A DNA stretch of 64,000 nucleotides from Dimorphilus gyrociliatus (GCA_904063045.1 CAJFCJ010000011.1:992001-1056000); one strand, 5' to 3'; numbered from the stretch's first letter, positions 9,701-32,229 are shown. Numbers and translations are program-made. The notes: generated by a model not told the origin, from the letters alone.

Positions 9701-12700
9701 CACAAACAACGACGAAAACAACTTCATACAGTACCGCAACAGTCGCTCTCCTCATCGGATGATGACGTTCGAACAACGCCAGATTGTACCAGTTGCGATG
9801 ATCAAGAATTAGAAAGCGAGAGCGTATCAGAAAAAGGTAAGATCACTTTGTATATTTATCCCACGAATCTTTTCCTAACCTACAAATTTTTCCAGTATTG
9901 TTTTTTAAAAGAAAAAACAAAAGAATGTAGACACAATAACATAAAAAATGTTGATAACAAATAGAAGCTAATCTTCCAAATAATATTATTAATACTATTT
10001 AACATAACTTTTAATCTTTTTAATGATCTACATTACTAAAAAAATTACTGTTAATTAATTACGTTCAGCTGCGCGACAAGTTGACCGAAACGAAATTTTG
10101 GCTGCGAAAATTAAAAAATTTTTAGCGGTGAGAAATAATATACACTTTATACACTGTGTCATACCGCAATATTGTTTTAGTTCTACTATTTTTATGGTTA
10201 ATATTTGTATGTGAACATATACATTTATAATAGAAATAACAAAAATTTGATATAAAAATAAATGCAGTATCCTAATACGCATATAATACTATATTATGCA
10301 TATATTTACAGTATAATTTATATGTTCACATATAACTCTTCGTAATTGAATATTTTTATAGGTCTTTTAGAGACGCGTGCTAACGACACACTAAACTTCC
10401 ATTTTTGCATAAAAGAATTAAACAAAAATAGGGGAAAAGAGAATGTAAGAGTGAAACAGGAATAGAGAGCAATTCGGGAACATAAAGATTAGCTCCCTCA
10501 TGACAAAGCAGACAGAAAAAAAAACATTTTTACTTACTCTCTTTATTCACTTGTTGCCTCCACTTGAACTAGATATAAGTAGGCCTTTAAAATAACACAG
10601 TACAATATACTAGTAACTTACAGCTGTTGAAAAACATTTATTCCAGTATTATTGTGTTGGAAATCAATTCCTGACTAATTGTGAGACATGTTACAGAGCA
10701 TTGAAAAAAGTCTCTCTTAACAATACTTGTATGTTATATTTCTTTGCAATTTCTAAAGAAAAGGTGTAAGATGTTTGCAGTTGATCGATTATGACCAAAT
10801 TAGTTTACGTATGTAATAAACAAAATTTTTTTTATTTCTTTCGATCTTTTTATTCGTTTTTTATGATTGACCAAAAAATACTCAATTCTTCTTAGAAAAG
10901 GCAGTTGAGACAAGGGATATAGTTTTAATAAAGAAACAAAATAGAATTAGAATTTTATTGAAAGCGACAAAAAAACAATTAAAACAGGCTATGGAAGTAT
11001 GGCGGGCAGCATCGGCGACGTGGCAAGAGCTAAACCTCGTCTTGCTCGCCAAAAAGAGAGTAGGAGTTTGGAGGAAGATAGCGGTTGGAGTGAACCTCGC
11101 TTTGCACCTTCTCCGCCACCAAATTTGGAAGAAGAAGAGGACGATAGGACCCCGGTTTCAACTACTTTTAGTGTTCAGGTTGATAAAAAAAACCAAACAA
11201 AAAACCATCATCTTCCTTCTTGCCTCGTTCACCCGTGCTGCCCGCTGTTGTTCGTGTGCCACGTGATCTCTACTGGCCCCAGCTTTCGGGAATCGTCGAC
11301 ATTTTATTTTTCTTCGAGTCTTCTTATAATTTCTTTATTTTCATTTTCTGCATGAATTTATTATCAGAAACAGATATTTTAATTTCAAAGTGTTATTTTT
11401 TAAATAGAATTTTGGCATGCTTCAATGTTCAGAAGAAATTGGATGAATTGTAGAAATTTATATCCAATTTTTTCTCAATTTAATTTATTTCTTTAAATAA
11501 TTTCTCTTCATTTTAATGATAATTAATTTTTCTTATCTACCATTATCCCGATAATATTTCAAGAGATCTTATTTAAATGAACATTAATCCTTAATTAGAC
11601 TACTTTGCTGTATAACCTTCTGTTTTTAGACTTTCGTCTTCTCTTGAATCCCATTCCATAAGAAAAATTTGACATATTTTATATGAATTTTTGTTTATTT
11701 TTTCTTTTATCCTTTCCCTATTCAGCATCCGGTGCGATGGGAAGTATCAAGAGACCAGACCAAATTGACTGGCCATATGATATTAAAAAAGGGAGAGCCG
11801 TCCTATCCAGGCGATACGCGTGGTAACATCTTAGGTAAGGAAAATTTAGGTAAGACAAACAAACTTTTTAGGCTTTTCTGTTTATATTTTACTGAAGAAG
11901 AAAAAGAAATCACTATCTATTTTTTCAATTTAGATGCTATCAGCAAAATATTGCTGTGCATTTTTATGACTTAGCACTTTACGGCGCTTTCTAGAATAGT
12001 TTTTCTCACCTGACAAGAATTCAACTTGTTCTGTCTCTTTCACCTTCACAAAGTTTTAAAAAAGAGCTATTACTATTCCTTGTAGTATTGTATTATTTTT
12101 TTGAGATTTCAGAATAAATATTTATCTAAATTATGCCTCTCTTAACAATAATCAATAGGCCTAAAGGTTACTGGAGGAAAAGTGACTGAAGATGGTTACA
12201 TGGGAGCGTTCATAACAAAGGTGAAAAAGGGCAGTATAGCAGATAGAATAGGATACTTGAAACCGGGTGACGAAGTCCTGTATTGGAATAATCGTCCGCT
12301 GAAAGGAACGACTTTCGAACAGACTTATGATATAATAATGGAATCAAAGCAGGAACCACAAGTGGAACTAACTGTTGAAAGGATAATCACAGAGTAAGTG
12401 ATATATTTATCACAATATGCAAAGCAATATTATTCAAATGTTTTGCTAAAACTGAAACAGTCCATCCAGCCTTCCACCGGAATATATTGATTCCCATGGC
12501 TATAGGATGAGGAAAGATACGCCTCATCAGACTCATCAGCGTCCTCATCATCCTCCCAGTGTTACTGTCACATCACCTACTGCCTCACCGGTCCGCCAAC
12601 ACAATAAGGGGGCCGAAATCCTTATTAAATTACTGTATGAAGATCGTGACCTGCAGCTGATAGTCACAGTTATCAGGGCCGTTCGTCTCCCAACAAGAGC

Positions 12701-23083: not shown

Positions 23084-26000
23084 ATGGGAGTTAAGGAAAG
23101 ACTTTGTATGAATCGATCTTCGAGAGAAGAACGGCAAAGTAATTGCGAGGAGACCCAAAACATCAATCAGGAAAATGTAGTAAACGAGGAGCCTGCTGAA
23201 CCTGGACGAATTAAATGGTCGTCGCCAACAGAATTTATGTTAACTTGCATTGGTTACAGCGTTGGTCTTGGAAATGTATGGAGGTTTCCTTACTTATGCT
23301 ATAAATCTGGAGGAGGTAAATTACATCTAAATATTCTTAATTCTTTACGCAAATTCTATAGTAAATCATCTTATAGATGTTTAATTATTTCTTTGCTAAT
23401 TACTCTTGACAATAATCTCTTTGTTAAGACAAAACAAATATAAATACACATAGTTAATATTATATTCACATACATGTAACTACAACCTCTATCACATCTT
23501 ATCTATTTGAATAAGCTATCATTTACTTTACATTTCTTTATTACAGGAGCCTTCCTTATTCCGTATATGATCATGATGGCTCTTATTGGTTGTCCAGGAT
23601 TATTCTTGGAATATTCATTTGGTCAATTTTGGGGAATTGGCGGATTAACTATATTCAAAAAAGTTTGCCCTTTATTTCAAGGTGGGTTTCTAATAATTTT
23701 TCTACAACAGCCTATTCAATTTTGTCCATGTGACGACACTTCACCATAGGCCTTTAACTTTTTCAAATAAGCATTTCGAGTATTTCTACCCATTTACCAT
23801 AAAATCTATATTAAGCATTTTTGAGGTGAAAACTATTGTAAAGCCTTTATGAATGAATATATCTTTCGCAGCTAACAAGTATAGCATACGTGAGGTCAAT
23901 GTCAGTAGAGCGTAATTCCTTATTTGAATTGAATGGAACTGTCTGATTTTGGCAAAAGCAAATAATTCAATTAGTTTCTCCCTTTCAAAAGCTGAGATTT
24001 GTCTCATTTTAGTAAAAGAATTCAATTAATATTTCTCTGATTCGTAAGCACAAGACTGAAACATGATACGAATAATTACGAAAGGTTTTCCTCTCTTTGT
24101 TTACATTAGCGGAAGACGACACACGAATATATGAATGATTATACGTCGTCCATTTTGACAAATAAGTTGATTCACTTCCTTCTCTAGTCACGGGAAAAAC
24201 AACAGTTAAAAGACTTCTTTACATTTCTTTTGAACTTGTAAATTATATCATAAAAAGTTCATTTCAATTTAAACATTGAAAATATGTCTGAAATTATATC
24301 AATGGAACGCTAAGGATTATGCTGTTTTCAATTTTGCACTGTTACTACAACATTGATTTATGTAGGTCAAAAGCCTTATTCTCTTTATAAAATGCACACC
24401 TCCCCTCTCGTATGCTTTAAAAGCTTAAAATATTCTTCTGAAGATCTTAAAGTGTCATCAAACATATTTTTTTTCGTCTAATCCTAGCTATATCCTTTTT
24501 TTTATTTAAATAATAACAGTAGATGTATTAATTTACAAAACCAAAATTACACTGTTTTATTGAGGCGGCTAAGTTCAATCATTTCATCCGGTTTTAATTT
24601 ACCATTGTTAAAACATGCCATTAAGTATAATCCTATAAATATTCGTTTTAACAGATTATTTCCGTTTTCCAAGATTATTTCTGCTTTGACCTTAAAACTG
24701 CGCGTTGGTTGGTTCTTTATTGCCTTTTTCAATGAATTGCTCACGTTATATGCCTCTAGGCAAATTACACGACACGTATTTGTCACCATGACACAGAATT
24801 TTAGTAAAGAGATTGTAAATTTTATTTTATTGACTAGGCAAGACAAAACGTTTTTATTTAGTAAGCTCGACACTATACTCCGCCGGCAAAAATATCAATA
24901 AATGCCAACACAACTGTTTAAATTAAAAATGACGTTTCAAAAAAAAAGAAGTATATACAGAATATTTTAATATATAAAAATGTATTAATTTTAACTGTTC
25001 CACATATTTCTGACTCAGAGATCATTTTTTGAGAACAATTTCTTTTTTATTTTCAATCACCTATTGTACATTTAGAAATTATTAACAGTGCTATTATTCA
25101 TGTATTTTAGCTGTAAAGGAAGCTACTTTCTAAAGAATATTAAATACGCTGTCTCGAATGAGAATATATACCCTCTTCTTTGTTTTATTAATCCTTGAAA
25201 AAGTTGCTTAGTTACAATATCGATTAGAGTTGTATACTCTTGAAGATCTTGTTCTGAATCGTTGAAACGTTTTGCCTCGTATTAATTTTTGTTACGCTTT
25301 TACAATCGTTCTCATATGCCCTAGCCAAATCAATAGTCTTTTACCCTTCCGTTAATCAATAGTCGACCTAGTGACCTATAAAAAGTCTCATTTTACAATG
25401 AAACCTAATTGAACTATACACTCATTTCGTTGATCAATGACTTTGGCCTATATAGACTATTGAATAGTAATAACTTTCGATTTTTTTAACTCGTCCTAAT
25501 CGTCTGCTCTTTGACGTAATCATGTATATATTCAATATAAACATATGTGACCTACTTATTGAGGGGGCGTTTCATCAATGCACCTTTTTACTACGTCTTA
25601 AATAAGACTCGTGTCACCTTATCAAATTAACAATCTTTTTCATCTATCTTTTACGACTTTTGTATAAGAATGTCCTATAATGGAGTATAGTATAGATGTC
25701 TTTTATTATATTTTTATTTAGTTTGTTGAAATATGATAAGGAATTTTTGAGAGAGCAAAAAAAGCCCCGTCAGATTTATGTGTAGTTGAGCAGGAGGGTG
25801 GGGGGAACTGTTACCGCCTTCGACAACAATATCAGCATATAATTTTTTCTTTACTGTATGATATTTTTAGATTCAGGTTAATAGGATTTCGGAATATTTC
25901 GAAGAATTTTTTAAACTTTATAGCAGACGAGCGAAGTAGAGTTTTTTTAGTTTGACAGAGAGTGGAAGAGATAGTGCATCGCACTTAAATTATCATGTAT

Positions 26001-29000
26001 TCTTTAGAGTAATTTTGTAAAATTCATGTAATTTAGCTTGTATAAAGCTTGGTTTTTCATAGCAAATACAGTTTATTTTGCTGGAATCACAAGGTTCACA
26101 GCTCCAGACGGGTCATTTAAGTGTCCTACTTAGAGTACTCAATTGCCAATATTAGTCTAGAACATGCACGTTCCAATCGTACTATTTGTTAGCGGTCTAA
26201 AACCTTGGCTTATACAGATATCTTTTTATTATTTATTTATCATGCTTTATCGATGTATTACAAAAAATTAATGTCTGGTGAATGTCTTACTCTCTGACCT
26301 ACTTTCCTATTCAAATATTTTTATTCTAACTTTTCATATAAAAAATTTAGAATATTTTTATTTTCATTACAGGAATCGGCCTATGCTATATGGTTTTAAA
26401 TGGTTTCGTGTGCATATACTATAACGTTATCATCGCCCTATCAATACACTACCTCTTTCGTTCATTTACAAGTGATCTACCATGGGGCAGTTGCGGAAAC
26501 GCATGGAATACTCCAAATTGCGGAGATCCAATCGCAAATATTACATATAATAACCAAATGAACAGCACGAACTTCACGACTAGTAGCCCAACAGAATTTG
26601 TTACCTCTACATATTCTCCAAATATGAATAAAACTGACAGAGTTAGCCCATCCAAGGAATATTGGGAAAGAAAATTGTTGGCTGTTACCAGCAGTCATTC
26701 CATTAGCAATTTAGGGAGTATAAGATGGGAATTATGTCTATGTTTACTAGCTGCTTGGGTAATCGTAGTCATATTTGTCAGCAGGGGTATCAAATCAACT
26801 GGAAAAGTTGCTTATTTTACTGCAACTTTCCCTTACCTCATGTTAACTGTTCTGGTTGTCAGGGGAGTCACCCTTAGAGGAGCTTCAGATGGAATCACTT
26901 TCTTTGTAATGCCACAATGGGAGAAGTTGCTATCTCCAGATATTTGGTTTAATGCTGCTACACAGCTATTTTACAGGTTTGTTAAAAAAATTCTCTTTTC
27001 ACCAGATCTAAAGTGCAGTTTTTTGTAACCTATCACTTCCTTTTTTAAGCTTAAGGAAAATATTTATTAATTTTTTTTATATATTGCATTCCATTGTCTT
27101 AGAATATAAACGTGCTAACCATATGATAGTTTTGTTCATATTGTTTTTTACTTATTTTAGGGAACTCAATACTCTAATCCATCTTGCATTTAGCACTTAA
27201 AAAAATACTCTCTAATATCCTGGAATATTTCTTCAATTAGGGAAAAGAATTATTAATCGCCATATAATTTTTAAAATTGTTCTTAAATGTAGATAAAATC
27301 CCAATATTTTCAAAAATTAAAGAAAACTACACATCGGAAGATAATCAATTATATTCAATCAAATTTTTTCTTCAGTACAAATATTGGATGGGGAGGAATG
27401 ATAACGATGGCTTCCTACAACGAGCGAAGTCATAACTGCTTTCGTGACGCAATTGTTATAAACTTTGTTTCTTTTTGTACTTCGCTGTACGCTGGATTTG
27501 CTGTTTTCTCTATCATTGGTTTTATGGCTACAGAAAGTGGACTTGACGTCGGAGTAAGATCAGGATTATCAGAATTTTCCACATATAATTTATTGAAATT
27601 AATATTTTTAGGATGTTATTCAGAGCGGACCTGAACTTGCATTCATTGTATACCCAAGAGCCCTTGCTCTTATGCCTTTGGCACCTATGTGGAGTGCGCT
27701 TTTCTTTTTTATGCTTTTCTTATTGGGAATTGGAAGTCAGGTTTGTACATTTTAAATTTAGTAGCGGTAAACAGTAATAACAAATTATCTAAAAAGCATA
27801 GATTTACTCAAAGAATTTTGAGCGCCGTCTAATTTTTTACTCAAAATACATAGGTATCAATTTATGACAAAGTTATTGCTGAGAAATTAATTTAATCATA
27901 TTAGATTTCGTATAGTTTAAAAGAGTTTTTTTTTTTTACAATAGCTATAATTTATATTATTTTTACATTGGCTATAGTATTTCAATAAGGTTATTTAGTA
28001 AAGTTAGTCTTACAAACTGTTAATTAAGGAGTTGTAAGCCAATTTTTATACCATAAACAAATTATTTATGAAAATTCGTTATTCTCAATGAATTAGCTTA
28101 ATGTCGTTCTCTTGTATAGAATAGATAGGTAGTAATGGTTCAATATGTACGCATCATACAAATTTTTACATGCAACCTTTATATCAATTGATAAGTGTGC
28201 AACACAGCAAACTATACAGGGGGAAAGTTGAGTTTCTTTTCTAAAACTTTGTATCGATTGAATGATAATCTCTGACGGAACTGTCAAAGTGAGCTAATTG
28301 ACTCAAGATCAAAATGAATATGTCATATACAAGATATATTGACATAAACTTTGCGGAAACTTTTGAAATTCTACTGAAAAACTACACAGTTAGAGGTTAA
28401 GAGAACAATCCACAAAAGCTTAGCAGATTTGTGAGACTATTAAAAGCGCTTAGTATTCATCGTGGCCAGTATTCCTTTCGTCATTGAGAATAAAGAATTT
28501 CCATGTATTTTAAGGTTGTGACAATATATTTGAGCAAATTCCAGGTCAGCCTTAATTTACAGTTAAAAAACTTAGCCTGACTTATTATATTAAGCATTTA
28601 ACTTAAAAATATATAATTGCACTAAACTTGGAGGTTAGTACACATTATACTTGTAGAGTATATTGACACTTCTATTGCACGCTCCTGCCTCTATGCTATT
28701 CTTTAAATTAATCTATTTTTCGTTCTACATCAAACTTTTCTTGCTGAATGTCCATAGTATAAATTAAGTTTGGGTTATAATATATCTGGCGTTGAAAGAA
28801 TTTTATTTAACCATATTAATATTGCTATATAATTTTTTAGACGCTTACATGGAATTATCTTTAAAAAATTTTAATATTTCTTATAGAATAGTTAATGCTA
28901 CAGCTTATTATAAAAGGTTTCTTTTATCTTACATCATTTTTTAATTTTATATCAAAAAGTTTTTATTTTTGCAATTATCAATTTAACTATTTAGTACTTT

Positions 29001-32000
29001 ATTACTTACTATAGATGAATACTAAAACCTTAAAAAATTATAGATATAATAAGCATGCATACTAAAATACTGTAAATTAAATTGTATTTATTTTATTATA
29101 TTAGCAATGTAGCTTCAAGCTCTGATTCTATTCTATTTATTACTCTATCTATCTGTCAATAACTAGTGGAGCAAGGGGAATTTTTGCACTATATTAATTA
29201 TATTTAATCACACAGAATCGTTTTGAAATAAAAATTCAAAACAGTTTAGAATAACAATATACCAAAATTTTTATATTTCATCAACAAGGCTTTTTATAAT
29301 TATAAAACTATCTGCTACTTTCGCCAAACCCCGATACAGATGGTGCTCATTGAAACTGTTGTTACTGGATTCGTCGATGAATTTCCTGCTCTTGGCAAAA
29401 CACCTTTAGCCCGCCTCGGAACGACAATAGGTTTTTGCATAGTTTTCTGCTTAGTTGCAATACCACAAACAACCCAGGTATTAGTCAATAGGAACAAGAA
29501 TCAGTAATTTTCTAATAACTGATAAAGGAAGCATTTTTCTCTTAAGAATGAGAGGATGAGCGTGACTGAACATTCATCTGTGTAAAGTTTCTATCTTTTG
29601 CTACTGTTTTTCGGCTACTTATTCATTAAGTTATTTTTGTTATCCACCATAGTTATTTCCTAAAAAGTCATCCCCTATACTCATCTAAAAATTCCCTATC
29701 AAGGCAGGAGTGTTGTAAAAGTATTTTCATAGTAGGAAATATATATTTTGCTTATTTACTTTTAAAGAAATTCTAAGCTAATAGGTTTAATTAGGTAATC
29801 CTTTCAGTAAGCGAGCAATAACGTATCAACTCGATATATAATTCGTTATTGAAGCTATTACCTAACACTGCTCCTCTCCTTAATCTTAGAAAATAATAGT
29901 ATCATTTTGCTTAGTGTTTAACTAAAAATGCATTTCGTATTAGCATGCTAAGAATATTGTGTTAGGCGTTGTTGTCACAATTCTTCAGATGGTTCAAGTA
30001 GAAACAGTGATGACCGGATTACGGGACGAATTTCCTCAATTTAACAGAACAAAAGTTCGCTATCTAGGAAATATCATCGTACTATGCACCGTGGGTTTCC
30101 TGATGGGTTTATCTTGTACAACTCAGGTTTCACTTTAACATTGACAATATATTTTCATTTTTCGAAATAGTCACACCTGTTTTCCTAAAGACAAATAGAG
30201 AGCTATTTCTTTCCCCCTAGTGCATGCTTATCCCTAGATTTTACTCTACACTCCCGTGTAAATTATTATTCTGGGCGGCGCTCTGAAAATGAAAGGATAA
30301 TTGCAGTGTTATATGAATTTTTCCACCTCAAATGAAAAATACTTCTTAATCTAGCTACTATGCTTATTTTTCTGATTGGAAAAGTTTCCTTATTCCCAAA
30401 CCAAATTTATGAAACAGAAAACTTCCGATAAAGAGCTCTTTAAAAGGAAGAAAATTACAAAAGTTACTTTTTATAAATAATCACTGCTGCAAAATAATTC
30501 TTATTAATAATTGATAACGAAAAATTCAAGAAGCGACTATAAACACATTTAGGCTTAAATTAAGTATTCAGTATAATTTTCAAAATCACATATTGAAAAG
30601 TATGCTTAATTGTCGAACATTTTATTATGTAGTCCTTTTTCATATAACGCAGATGGTAGGGTTGGAAACTGTTATGACTGGTATCACTGACGAATTTAAA
30701 ATAAAAATCTGGTGGAAACGGCTTTTGGCTACAGTTGTGGTTGCAGTCTGTATGTTTTTATGTGGTTTACCTCAAGTTACACAGGTTTGATAATATAAAT
30801 CTGTATAGTTCCCATAATTAATGATTATTTAGCTGCATTGATAATAATAGCTGATCAATCAATAATTAGCTTAAATTATATACCATAATATGCAATGGCT
30901 AGCTATACGTATAAGACATAATTTAGGAATATTTACTTAGAACGTATACAGATATATGAAAAAGCTTCTTTCATATATTGCTATACTTAATTATTCCTAA
31001 GATAATTGTACGTTGTTCCAAATTTTCTGCATTTATAACTATCAAATTCTATAAGGTTGATAGATTTTTAACAGAAAATAGCGTCCCAGTTTTAATGTTT
31101 AACCTTTTGATTTTGGTTTCCTGATTTATTCAACAAAACAATTAACAATCACTTTTATAAAAGCGTTGTATATTTGAAATGAATTTAAATCTGCAGGGGC
31201 AGTATACATAGTTATTACATCTATACAACGTGATATGCATCTTTACCTTTTCTATTTCTTATATATAAATTTATATATACATATATCTACTTGTATATAT
31301 GAATATATTATACATGTAATTTTTAAACCAAAGTCTCTCAACCATAGCCTCTTTGTTTGTTGTTAAGTAAATCGCTTCTTAATTTTCTCTATCGAGAAAT
31401 GCAGTGCTACATAAGTTTGCTTCCTTTCATACCGCTCGTCGACTATCTATTGTAATCAAGTTAATCAAGTGAATGATTGTGTAACTGCATGGCGAAAATG
31501 GCTGAACATAGATATGCTTTCCTTTAAACATTGTTTCATAAAAATTCTATCAATTCTTTTACTCTTGCATTAAATAGCAAAGACTGCATACTAATTATAT
31601 TCTTGAATGAGCTTCGGTTATGGGTTAATAAGATTATATACAATATATTTATTCATTTAAAGTATTTTGCTATTTGATTCACGAGCATAATTTTAGATGG
31701 AAAGTGTAAATTTGATATGAACGAACGCTTTTTTTCTATTTAGGGTGGGATGTTTGTGCTGTCACTGATTGACCATTACGCCGCCAGCTTTTCAGTATTG
31801 CTCATAGCTTTTCTTGAATTCATCATTATATACTGGATATATGGTGGAGCGCAATTTTCTGGAGATGTGAAGATTATGTTAGGTTCTCCTCCAGGTGTTT
31901 GGTGGAGGATATGTTGGGCTATTTTGTCACCTTTGGCTATTGTTTTCATTATTATCTTCAGTTTTATTAACTACAAAGGAGCAAAGTATGGTAGTTACAC

Positions 32001-32229
32001 TTATCCTACTTGGGCGGACTTTATTGGATGGTGTATTGCTTTGGCATCTTTCATACCTATTATCCCTATTGCTATTGTTAAACTCCTAAAGAGTTCTGGG
32101 TCCAACATATTTGAGAAATTGAAGTTCATCACTCGACCTCCCTGTGAAAGAGAAGTAGAGAGACGGCAAGATGTTGAGATGAGACAGGGACCTCTTTTAG
32201 AAGAAGCTCCCGGCGCGCTCGACGCCTAA
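23084..32229 (+). CDS. SLC6 Na+/Cl- coupled amino-acid transporter (glycine/proline transporter-like)
   Basis: Exons 23084-23315 ([18 protein letters not shown]), 23547-23681, 26373-26976, 27376-27553, 27612-27740 (LGIGSQ), one of 29340-29477/29989-30126/30653-30784, then 31744-32229. Gly at the SERT D98-equivalent position indicates an amino-acid rather than monoamine substrate. Confidence 0.95.
29340..29477 (+). CDS. SLC6 alternative exon A (TM8b-TM9)
   Basis: cag|ATG..CAG|gtatta, 138 nt: [46 protein letters not shown]. Confidence 0.85.
29989..30126 (+). CDS. SLC6 alternative exon B (TM8b-TM9)
   Basis: cag|ATG..CAG|gtttca, 138 nt: [46 protein letters not shown]. Confidence 0.85.
30653..30784 (+). 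CDS. SLC6 alternative exon C (TM8b-TM9)
   Basis: cag|ATG..CAG|gtttga, 132 nt: [44 protein letters not shown]. Confidence 0.85.

Follow-up and report, generated by a model that had tools for sequence, protein, structure and literature searches.

How does a pre-mRNA with three homologous exons in tandem come to keep one of them at a time? The question is raised by a gene of the SLC6, or sodium:neurotransmitter symporter, family (Pfam PF00209 match) in the annelid Dimorphilus gyrociliatus, which lies at about 23084-32229 of the window, the whole stretch of 64,000 nucleotides (nt) that was analyzed (GCA_904063045.1 CAJFCJ010000011.1:992001-1056000; AT-rich animal DNA, about 29% G+C). Coordinates count from the first letter of the window, and all features described here are on the + strand. 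Three homologous exons, A (29340-29477, 138 nt), B (29989-30126, 138 nt) and C (30653-30784, 132 nt), stand between two constitutive exons, one ending at 27740 and the other starting at 31744. All three open with CAG/AUGGU and close with CAG/GU, the slash marking the splice site, and they encode the loop after transmembrane segment 8 (TM8), intracellular loop 4 (IL4), together with TM9. Their products share 43-44% protein identity among each other.

Two short intron segments, R1 upstream of exon A and R2 downstream of it, are probably the arms of a real, selectively maintained long-range helix in the pre-mRNA, one member of a conserved set of mutually exclusive helices that would choose among the exons. 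In vivo formation of these helices, and the exon favored by each of them, we infer from the sequence.

Pairing of R1 with R2 around exon A

A sequence-only reading of the region had proposed that ACGCUCCUGCCU (28679-28690), upstream of exon A, is complementary to AGGCAGGAGUGU (29702-29713), between exons A and B. Both the letters and the coordinates are exact. The two segments form 12 contiguous pairs, one of them G-U, with an energy of -21.8 kcal/mol, the unit of all energies below. With its flanks, the helix grows to 16 base pairs (bp) with one bulged U, between 28675-28690 and 29702-29718, at -26 to -27. The upstream arm, R1 (28675-28690, UUGCACGCUCCUGCCU), lies 934 nt into intron 1. The downstream arm, R2 (29702-29718, AGGCAGGAGUGU-U-GUAA), lies in intron 2, at a distance of 225 nt from exon A and 270 nt from exon B. 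The helix encloses exon A alone, a real alternative exon, in a loop of about 1 kb. A second element noticed in the same reading, designated R3 (29552-29564, GAGGAUGAGCGUG), also pairs with R1 as described, through a core of 7-8 bp at CACGCUC plus CCUC:GAGG, at -19.7 to -20.0. R2 and R3 both use 28677-28690, so that one helix can exist at a time, with R3 the weaker partner.

RNAduplex proved uninformative on whole introns, where it chains hundreds of weak pairs; scans for contiguous helices and scans with short windows were used. When the four introns were shuffled 160 times with dinucleotides preserved, the top contiguous helix attained -21.8 in 6 of the trials. The three top helices of the cluster score -21.9, -21.8 and -19.4, while the second and third best helices in the shuffles never went beyond -20.4 and -18.4, respectively. 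A parallel-orientation control, which keeps local composition, gave -14.2 at best. Other 4-kb blocks of the window mostly yield -14.5 to -20.5, save for TA microsatellites and a few stronger helices. The strongest of the non-microsatellite helices elsewhere in the window is a GC-rich one of 14 bp, 10999-11012 with 11235-11248, at -25.0. Taken alone, the energy of R1:R2 is unusual (about 4%), neither unique nor decisive.

Conservation of both arms

Two relatives allow the introns to be compared. Relative X (Logan SRR23372228) carries the whole cluster on a 38-kb contig, L008, to which contigs L005, L009 and L010 are identical. Relative Y (ERR14224705/6; contigs L001, L002, L012 and L013) covers the start of intron 1 as far as R1, and intron 3 through exon C. 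The contigs were reached by way of fragments of open reading frames (ORFs) in a protein collection, namely an exon-C ORF, a mixed alignment of four unrelated window ORFs, and cluster members. Intron lengths in X are nearly equal to those in D. gyrociliatus, and identity between the introns of these two species is 47-56% in global alignment.

The R1 block (28675-28692) has 18 nt identical in X, with a core of 17 nt identical in X and Y. The R2 block (29701-29717), compared in X only, has 17 nt identical there between flanks that cannot be aligned. Exact collinear matches of at least 17 nt between D. gyrociliatus and X number six in 3.6 kb of intron, and the R1 and R2 blocks are among them. When 15 conserved blocks were paired in all 105 combinations, two pairs stood far apart from the rest: R1:R2 (-26.0, and -25.0 in X) and D1:SC (-24.7, and -23.0 in X), a helix described below. 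Both exceed the minimum found for 3000 random pairs of intron windows, -18.4. With the blocks shuffled internally, -26.0 was reached in 1 of 400 trials, and a second pair of -24.7 in none of 400. In a helix scan of X alone, the three best helices were the orthologues of the three best in D. gyrociliatus, with R1:R2 first. Folding of the segment from R1 to just past R2, the form in which it would be present while transcription proceeds, gives a minimum-energy structure that holds the helix (11 of 12 pairs); in both species its mean pair probability is about 0.95. R3 is kept in part; in X its GAGG has become AAGA, only the AUGAGCGUG core remains, and the energy falls to -13.8 to -16.3. The proposed pairing of R1 with R2 holds up both against shuffled sequence (6 of 160) and between species, where its arms are exact islands of 17-18 nt in introns that are about 50% identical. 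The helix set, above all its conservation, is far beyond chance.

It is very improbable that the 12-bp complementarity came about by chance between GC-rich segments or is a relic of the inverted repeats of a mobile element. A helix of this strength does turn up in one shuffle in 27 over 4 kb, and the window has a few comparable ones at other places, but both arms are exact in X, in introns otherwise near saturation, and the helix ranks first in that species too. Neither arm has a further copy in the 64-kb window at up to three mismatches, and the segment they enclose is an ancestral coding exon, no transposon; inverted terminal repeats of a mobile element were rejected on these two grounds. 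Nor was any exon-derived relic detected in the introns.

D1, a docking-type site, and its partners

Intron 1 opens with 130 nt of strong conservation, which contain a docking-type site, D1 (27819-27831, UGAGCGCCGUCUA), located 79 nt after the 5' splice site and within an exact block of 27 nt (27804-27830). Its core is identical in X, while in Y two C-to-U changes leave the pairing intact. A block of 24 nt just after D1 (27849-27872) is likewise identical in X and nearly so in Y; the scans found no conserved partner for it.

One partner of D1, SA (29338-29349), consists of the 3' splice-site AG and the first 10 nt of exon A. It forms 12 bp with D1, at -21.0 in D. gyrociliatus and -20.8 in X, and exon A begins with 23 nt that X shares without a difference, synonymous sites included. 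The other partner belongs to SC (30272-30301), a hub 370 nt upstream of exon C that is the conservation peak of intron 3 in X and Y. SC comprises a selector, UGGGCGGCGCUC (30272-30283), and a tail, AAUGAAAGGAUAAU (30288-30301). D1:SC has 12 bp and -24.3. In Y, the change of C27829 to U is accompanied by a change of G30274 to A, converting a C-G pair to U-A, a compensatory change; with C27826 changed to U a wobble pair remains, and the Y helix has 13 bp and -20.9. In X, which has G30274 to A, the helix has undergone two changes and retains 12 bp through a register shift of one base, at -23.0. Conservation with compensatory substitution is therefore seen for D1:SC; R1:R2, being invariant, is uninformative in this respect. 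Because SA and SC both pair with 27819-27831, they compete for D1. For exon B, D1 has an imperfect match just upstream of the exon (-18.0), replaced in X by a different match of -14.1. SC was also considered as a decayed copy of an exon and rejected as such: when exons were aligned locally to introns, the scores did not exceed those of shuffles, and no exon-derived relic emerged in the introns.

The sequence-only reading took R1 for the docking site, from which competing partners would loop out exon A. Its loop-out element stands, in that a conserved helix of this type surrounds exon A within a network that resembles docking sites and selectors. The role given to R1 does not. Both partners of R1, R2 and R3, lie in the same intron 2, so R1 is not a docking site that decides between exons, and at 934 nt into the intron it lacks the position next to the constitutive exon that D1 has. 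The docking-type hub appears to be D1 (27819-27831), not R1. R1:R2 would be a nested, exon-flanking loop-out helix of the type known from srp, with a putative effect on exon A usage.

Further conserved blocks and protein sites

The last intron contains a downstream docking-type block, c13 (31417-31438, UUGCUUCCUUUCA..CCGCUCG), with a 13-nt block identical in X. Its best partner in both species is SC with its tail, which pairs with 31421-31438 at -20.5 in D. gyrociliatus and -26.4 in X. A candidate selector for c13, c7 (29524-29533, AAAGGAAGCA), lies 47 nt after the 5' splice site of exon A in a block of 18 nt (29519-29536) identical in X. It forms a perfect helix of 10 bp with 31418-31427 (-14.4, and -14.3 in X), overlapping the nucleotides of c13 that pair with SC. 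Both pairings of c13, with c7 and with the SC tail, are conserved, and their energies in D. gyrociliatus fall at about the 0.1-0.3% tail of the distribution for random windows. A weaker pairing, between R2 and SC around exon B, is possible as well, at -20.1 (-17.0 in X) with five G-U pairs. Conserved complementary sequences flank a single variable exon in two cases, R1:R2 around A and SC plus tail with c13 around C. Every arm of the helix set is conserved, and nearly all large conserved intronic blocks appear to be arms of mutually complementary pairs, several of them with two alternative partners.

Further pairings were noted near these blocks. The 3' part of exon A (29422-29455) can pair with a conserved block just upstream of exon B (29946-29977) at -21.2, and at -20.4 in X. 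This pairing might hide the branch and pyrimidine region of exon B from A; for both arms, conservation could equally have other grounds. Intron 1 has a hairpin, 28066-28092 with 28480-28506, at -24.0, whose 24-nt arms are 92% complementary; the 3' arm is a conserved block, and its best partner in X is the SC region (-20.5). Two other pairings were rejected as species-specific or due to chance. One, between 29867-29875 and 31195-31203, has neither side (29863-29881 or 31192-31203) conserved in X; the other, of R2 with 29866-29880, appears in the global fold of D. gyrociliatus, and again 29863-29881 is not conserved in X. Intron 3 also contains UGCAUG, an Rbfox-type motif, at 30222-30227, about 95 nt after exon B, kept in X and Y amid drifting surroundings. 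Protein-based regulation may, given this motif, act beside the helices.

A reading in which R1 and R2 are conserved as sites for splicing proteins, their complementarity being incidental, is unlikely. Candidates for such sites could be named: the pyrimidine-rich CUCCUGCCUCU as a PTB-type site, GCACG as a secondary Rbfox-type site, and the purine-rich GGCAGGAG as an enhancer for SR proteins. Both arms are invariant, and conservation alone cannot separate protein binding from pairing; the conserved UGCAUG nearby in intron 3 makes it likely that regulation by proteins is present as well; and R1:R2 is missing from global folds. Incidental complementarity would, on the other hand, have to arise between two blocks of 17-18 nt, each conserved on its own, that pair over 15-16 nt, an energy that shuffles of the same composition match in 1 of 400. 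It would also have to arise beside a sister helix, D1:SC, with a compensatory change, and in a cluster where nearly all large conserved blocks are mutually complementary.

Splicing and origin of the three exons

Evidence from RNA comes from the spliced contigs of a single public run, X1, and one mRNA contig of relative Y. The upstream constitutive exon (27612-27740) encodes the end of TM8, its translation ending in ...GIGSQ, and its 5' splice site has GU at 27741; it has 93% amino acid identity with relative X. Contigs of run X1 join 27740 to 29340 and to 30653, and they join 29477 and 30784 to 31744, the start of the downstream constitutive exon (31744-32229), which is the last coding exon, encodes TM10-12 and has a Pfam SNF match. 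All four joints are GT..AG. Since the joints into and out of both A and C were seen, A-only and C-only mRNAs exist in D. gyrociliatus. The Y mRNA contig (L011) has exon C only, joined at the orthologous boundaries. No A-B, A-C or B-C joint was seen in the run X1 contigs, which show presence, not absence. The cluster is thus one of tandem homologous exons, one per mRNA, as judged from these joints and the Y contig; exon B is unseen in spliced RNA, and in run X1 it lies on one unbroken contig with both flanking introns. One further run X1 contig matches the window from 31171 on, preceded by 111 unrelated letters.

The public gene model CAD5119976.1 (DgyrCDS8561, 231 amino acids) ends with ...GIGSQ followed by 11 residues from 27798-27833. 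By taking the docking block D1 for a terminal coding exon, it cuts the transporter short; the correction follows because spliced contigs run from 27740 to exons A and C instead.

Amino acid identity with relative X, in which exon B is also present, is 87% for exon A, 78% for B and 95% for C. Differences between the species by first, second and third codon position number 4, 2 and 16 in exon A, 9, 7 and 21 in B, and 3, 0 and 11 in C. Because they fall mainly at third positions, all three appear to be functional coding exons under purifying selection. The first 16 residues of exon A are common to ORFs of many other animals, and a metagenome contig from a more distant animal (L006:567-1689) carries one A-like exon, set between the same two flanking exons. 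Exon A is therefore the ancestral type, with B and C lineage-specific copies. L006 has one A-like exon only, which suggests that the three-exon cluster arose within the dinophilid lineage. The closest solved structures to the full-length protein of a relative are GlyT1, GlyT2 and the proline transporter. A protein search with the last exon found no match in the protein collection, which also lacks the ORFs of exons A and B from the relatives.

How the helices might choose an exon

The proposed set consists of D1 with SA or SC, SC plus its tail with c13, c7 with c13, and R1 with R2. Because arms are shared or helices cross, only certain combinations could form. For exon C, D1:SC would form with R1:R2 nested inside it and loop out A and B. 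The distance between the upstream 5' splice site and exon C would thereby fall from 2912 nt to about 450 nt. For exon B, R1:R2 would tuck away A while SC:c13 loops out C, leaving B. For exon A, D1:SA and c7:c13 would zip both long introns around A, looping out B and C; R1:R2 crosses both of these helices and is therefore incompatible with them.

Splicing in D. gyrociliatus shows adaptation to short introns, with a median intron of 66 bp (bioRxiv 10.1101/2020.05.07.078311), and the introns of 1.6-2.9 kb used here are for this reason plausible clients for helices that bridge them; a need to bridge introns of 1-3 kb is thus a plausible cause of the selection. Such helices might then do no more than bring long introns within reach of a short-intron spliceosome, raising efficiency without choosing exons. 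We consider this rather unlikely as a full account. The lengths here, 959-2912 nt against that median, speak for it, as does D1:SA, which links both ends of intron 1. R1:R2, however, encloses an exon and joins the ends of no intron in use. The shared arms (D1 with SA or SC; SC with D1 or c13; c13 with c7 or SC) make the helices alternatives and not additive aids, and looping out A to shorten the intron that leads to C is itself a choice of exon.

Several observations weigh against a helix set that chooses the exon. R1 and R2 are invariant, and so R1:R2 is without any substitution in the available species and shows no covariation; R2 was compared in one relative. What argues for this helix is that two conserved islands are complementary. 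In neither species does R1:R2 appear in the minimum-energy folds computed globally for the full 4.1 kb, and D1:SC appears there in X only; folds of this length are unreliable, yet we count them as contrary evidence. Two of the helices, c7:c13 (-14.4) and R2:SC with its five G-U pairs, exceed chance only modestly. No joint to or from exon B was seen in the run X1 contigs, which again show presence and not absence, leaving the B state without support from RNA. Finally, the AG of exon A lies within D1:SA, a pairing that could repress A instead of promoting it.

With these points in view, a wider scenario is put forward as a tentative one, with odds somewhat short of even. After a lineage-specific triplication of the exon, dinophilids may have evolved, independently, a full switch with three states out of five or six conserved helices. 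D1, c13 and SC would share arms, each exon having its own compatible pair of helices with the helices of the other states excluded. If true, docking/selector logic would have arisen convergently beyond the arthropods and vertebrates, and in a genome with a spliceosome tuned to introns of 66 nt. The isoforms would differ in IL4 and TM9 of a GlyT-like transporter. The cluster is compact, with three exons in 4 kb, and evolutionarily young, and a helix can be named for nearly all of its conserved intronic blocks; the cluster is suited to studying the birth of competing structures after exon duplication.

Comparison with known systems

To our knowledge, proof that RNA structure guides mutually exclusive exon choice comes almost exclusively from arthropods (Dscam1, 14-3-3zeta, Mhc, srp, MRP1) and from a small number of vertebrate genes. 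Full-text literature searches returned no report of such structures in annelids, in other lophotrochozoans or in SLC6 genes. The mechanism proposed here would be of a known kind in a new phylum and gene family, the first in an annelid.

In the Graveley model for exon 6 of Dscam1, one selector at a time pairs with the docking site, looping out the exons in between (PMC6071210). As in that cluster, D1 lies just after the constitutive exon and is complementary to conserved elements of different exons, SA and SC. D1 fits the definition of docking site and selector given there in position, conservation, competition and covariation (PMC6071210), the present proposal being one based on sequence. Unlike Dscam1 exon 6, the cluster has three exons only, with a convincing selector for A and for C, not for B. 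The selector of A overlaps the 3' splice site itself, R1 is not the docking site, and the host is an annelid, not an arthropod.

Pairings that flank an exon or act in both directions have been described for srp and for the exon 4 and exon 9 clusters of Dscam (Yue et al. 2016, PMC4691838; described in PMC6071210). R1:R2, with both candidate partners of R1 in one intron, is closer to these than to a docking site. The likeness is that intronic complements surround a single exon (R1:R2 around A, SC:c13 around C), that upstream and downstream pairings would cooperate, and that neighboring helices are mutually exclusive. The difference is in the means of exclusion, which here would come from shared arms (R2, SC and c13) together with crossing topology.

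The clusters of 14-3-3zeta, Mhc and MRP1 use downstream docking (PMC6071210). In a similar arrangement, c13 in the last intron can pair with elements that closely follow variable exons, c7 after A and the SC tail after B, and its pairing would draw the 5' splice site of the chosen exon towards the downstream exon. The helices of the present cluster differ in being short (10 bp, or bipartite with 7+9 bp) and modestly above chance in D. gyrociliatus, and in occurring alongside an upstream docking site within one cluster.

The fourth system, exons 7a and 7b of human and mouse ATE1, is experimentally proven and involves two exons in vertebrates (PMC7797038), whereas the present one involves three exons in an annelid and is known computationally. 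The two are alike in design: in ATE1 (elements R1-R5), as they would in the D. gyrociliatus cluster, several conserved intronic elements combine competition for one element with a long-range helix that loops out a pair of exons (PMC7797038).

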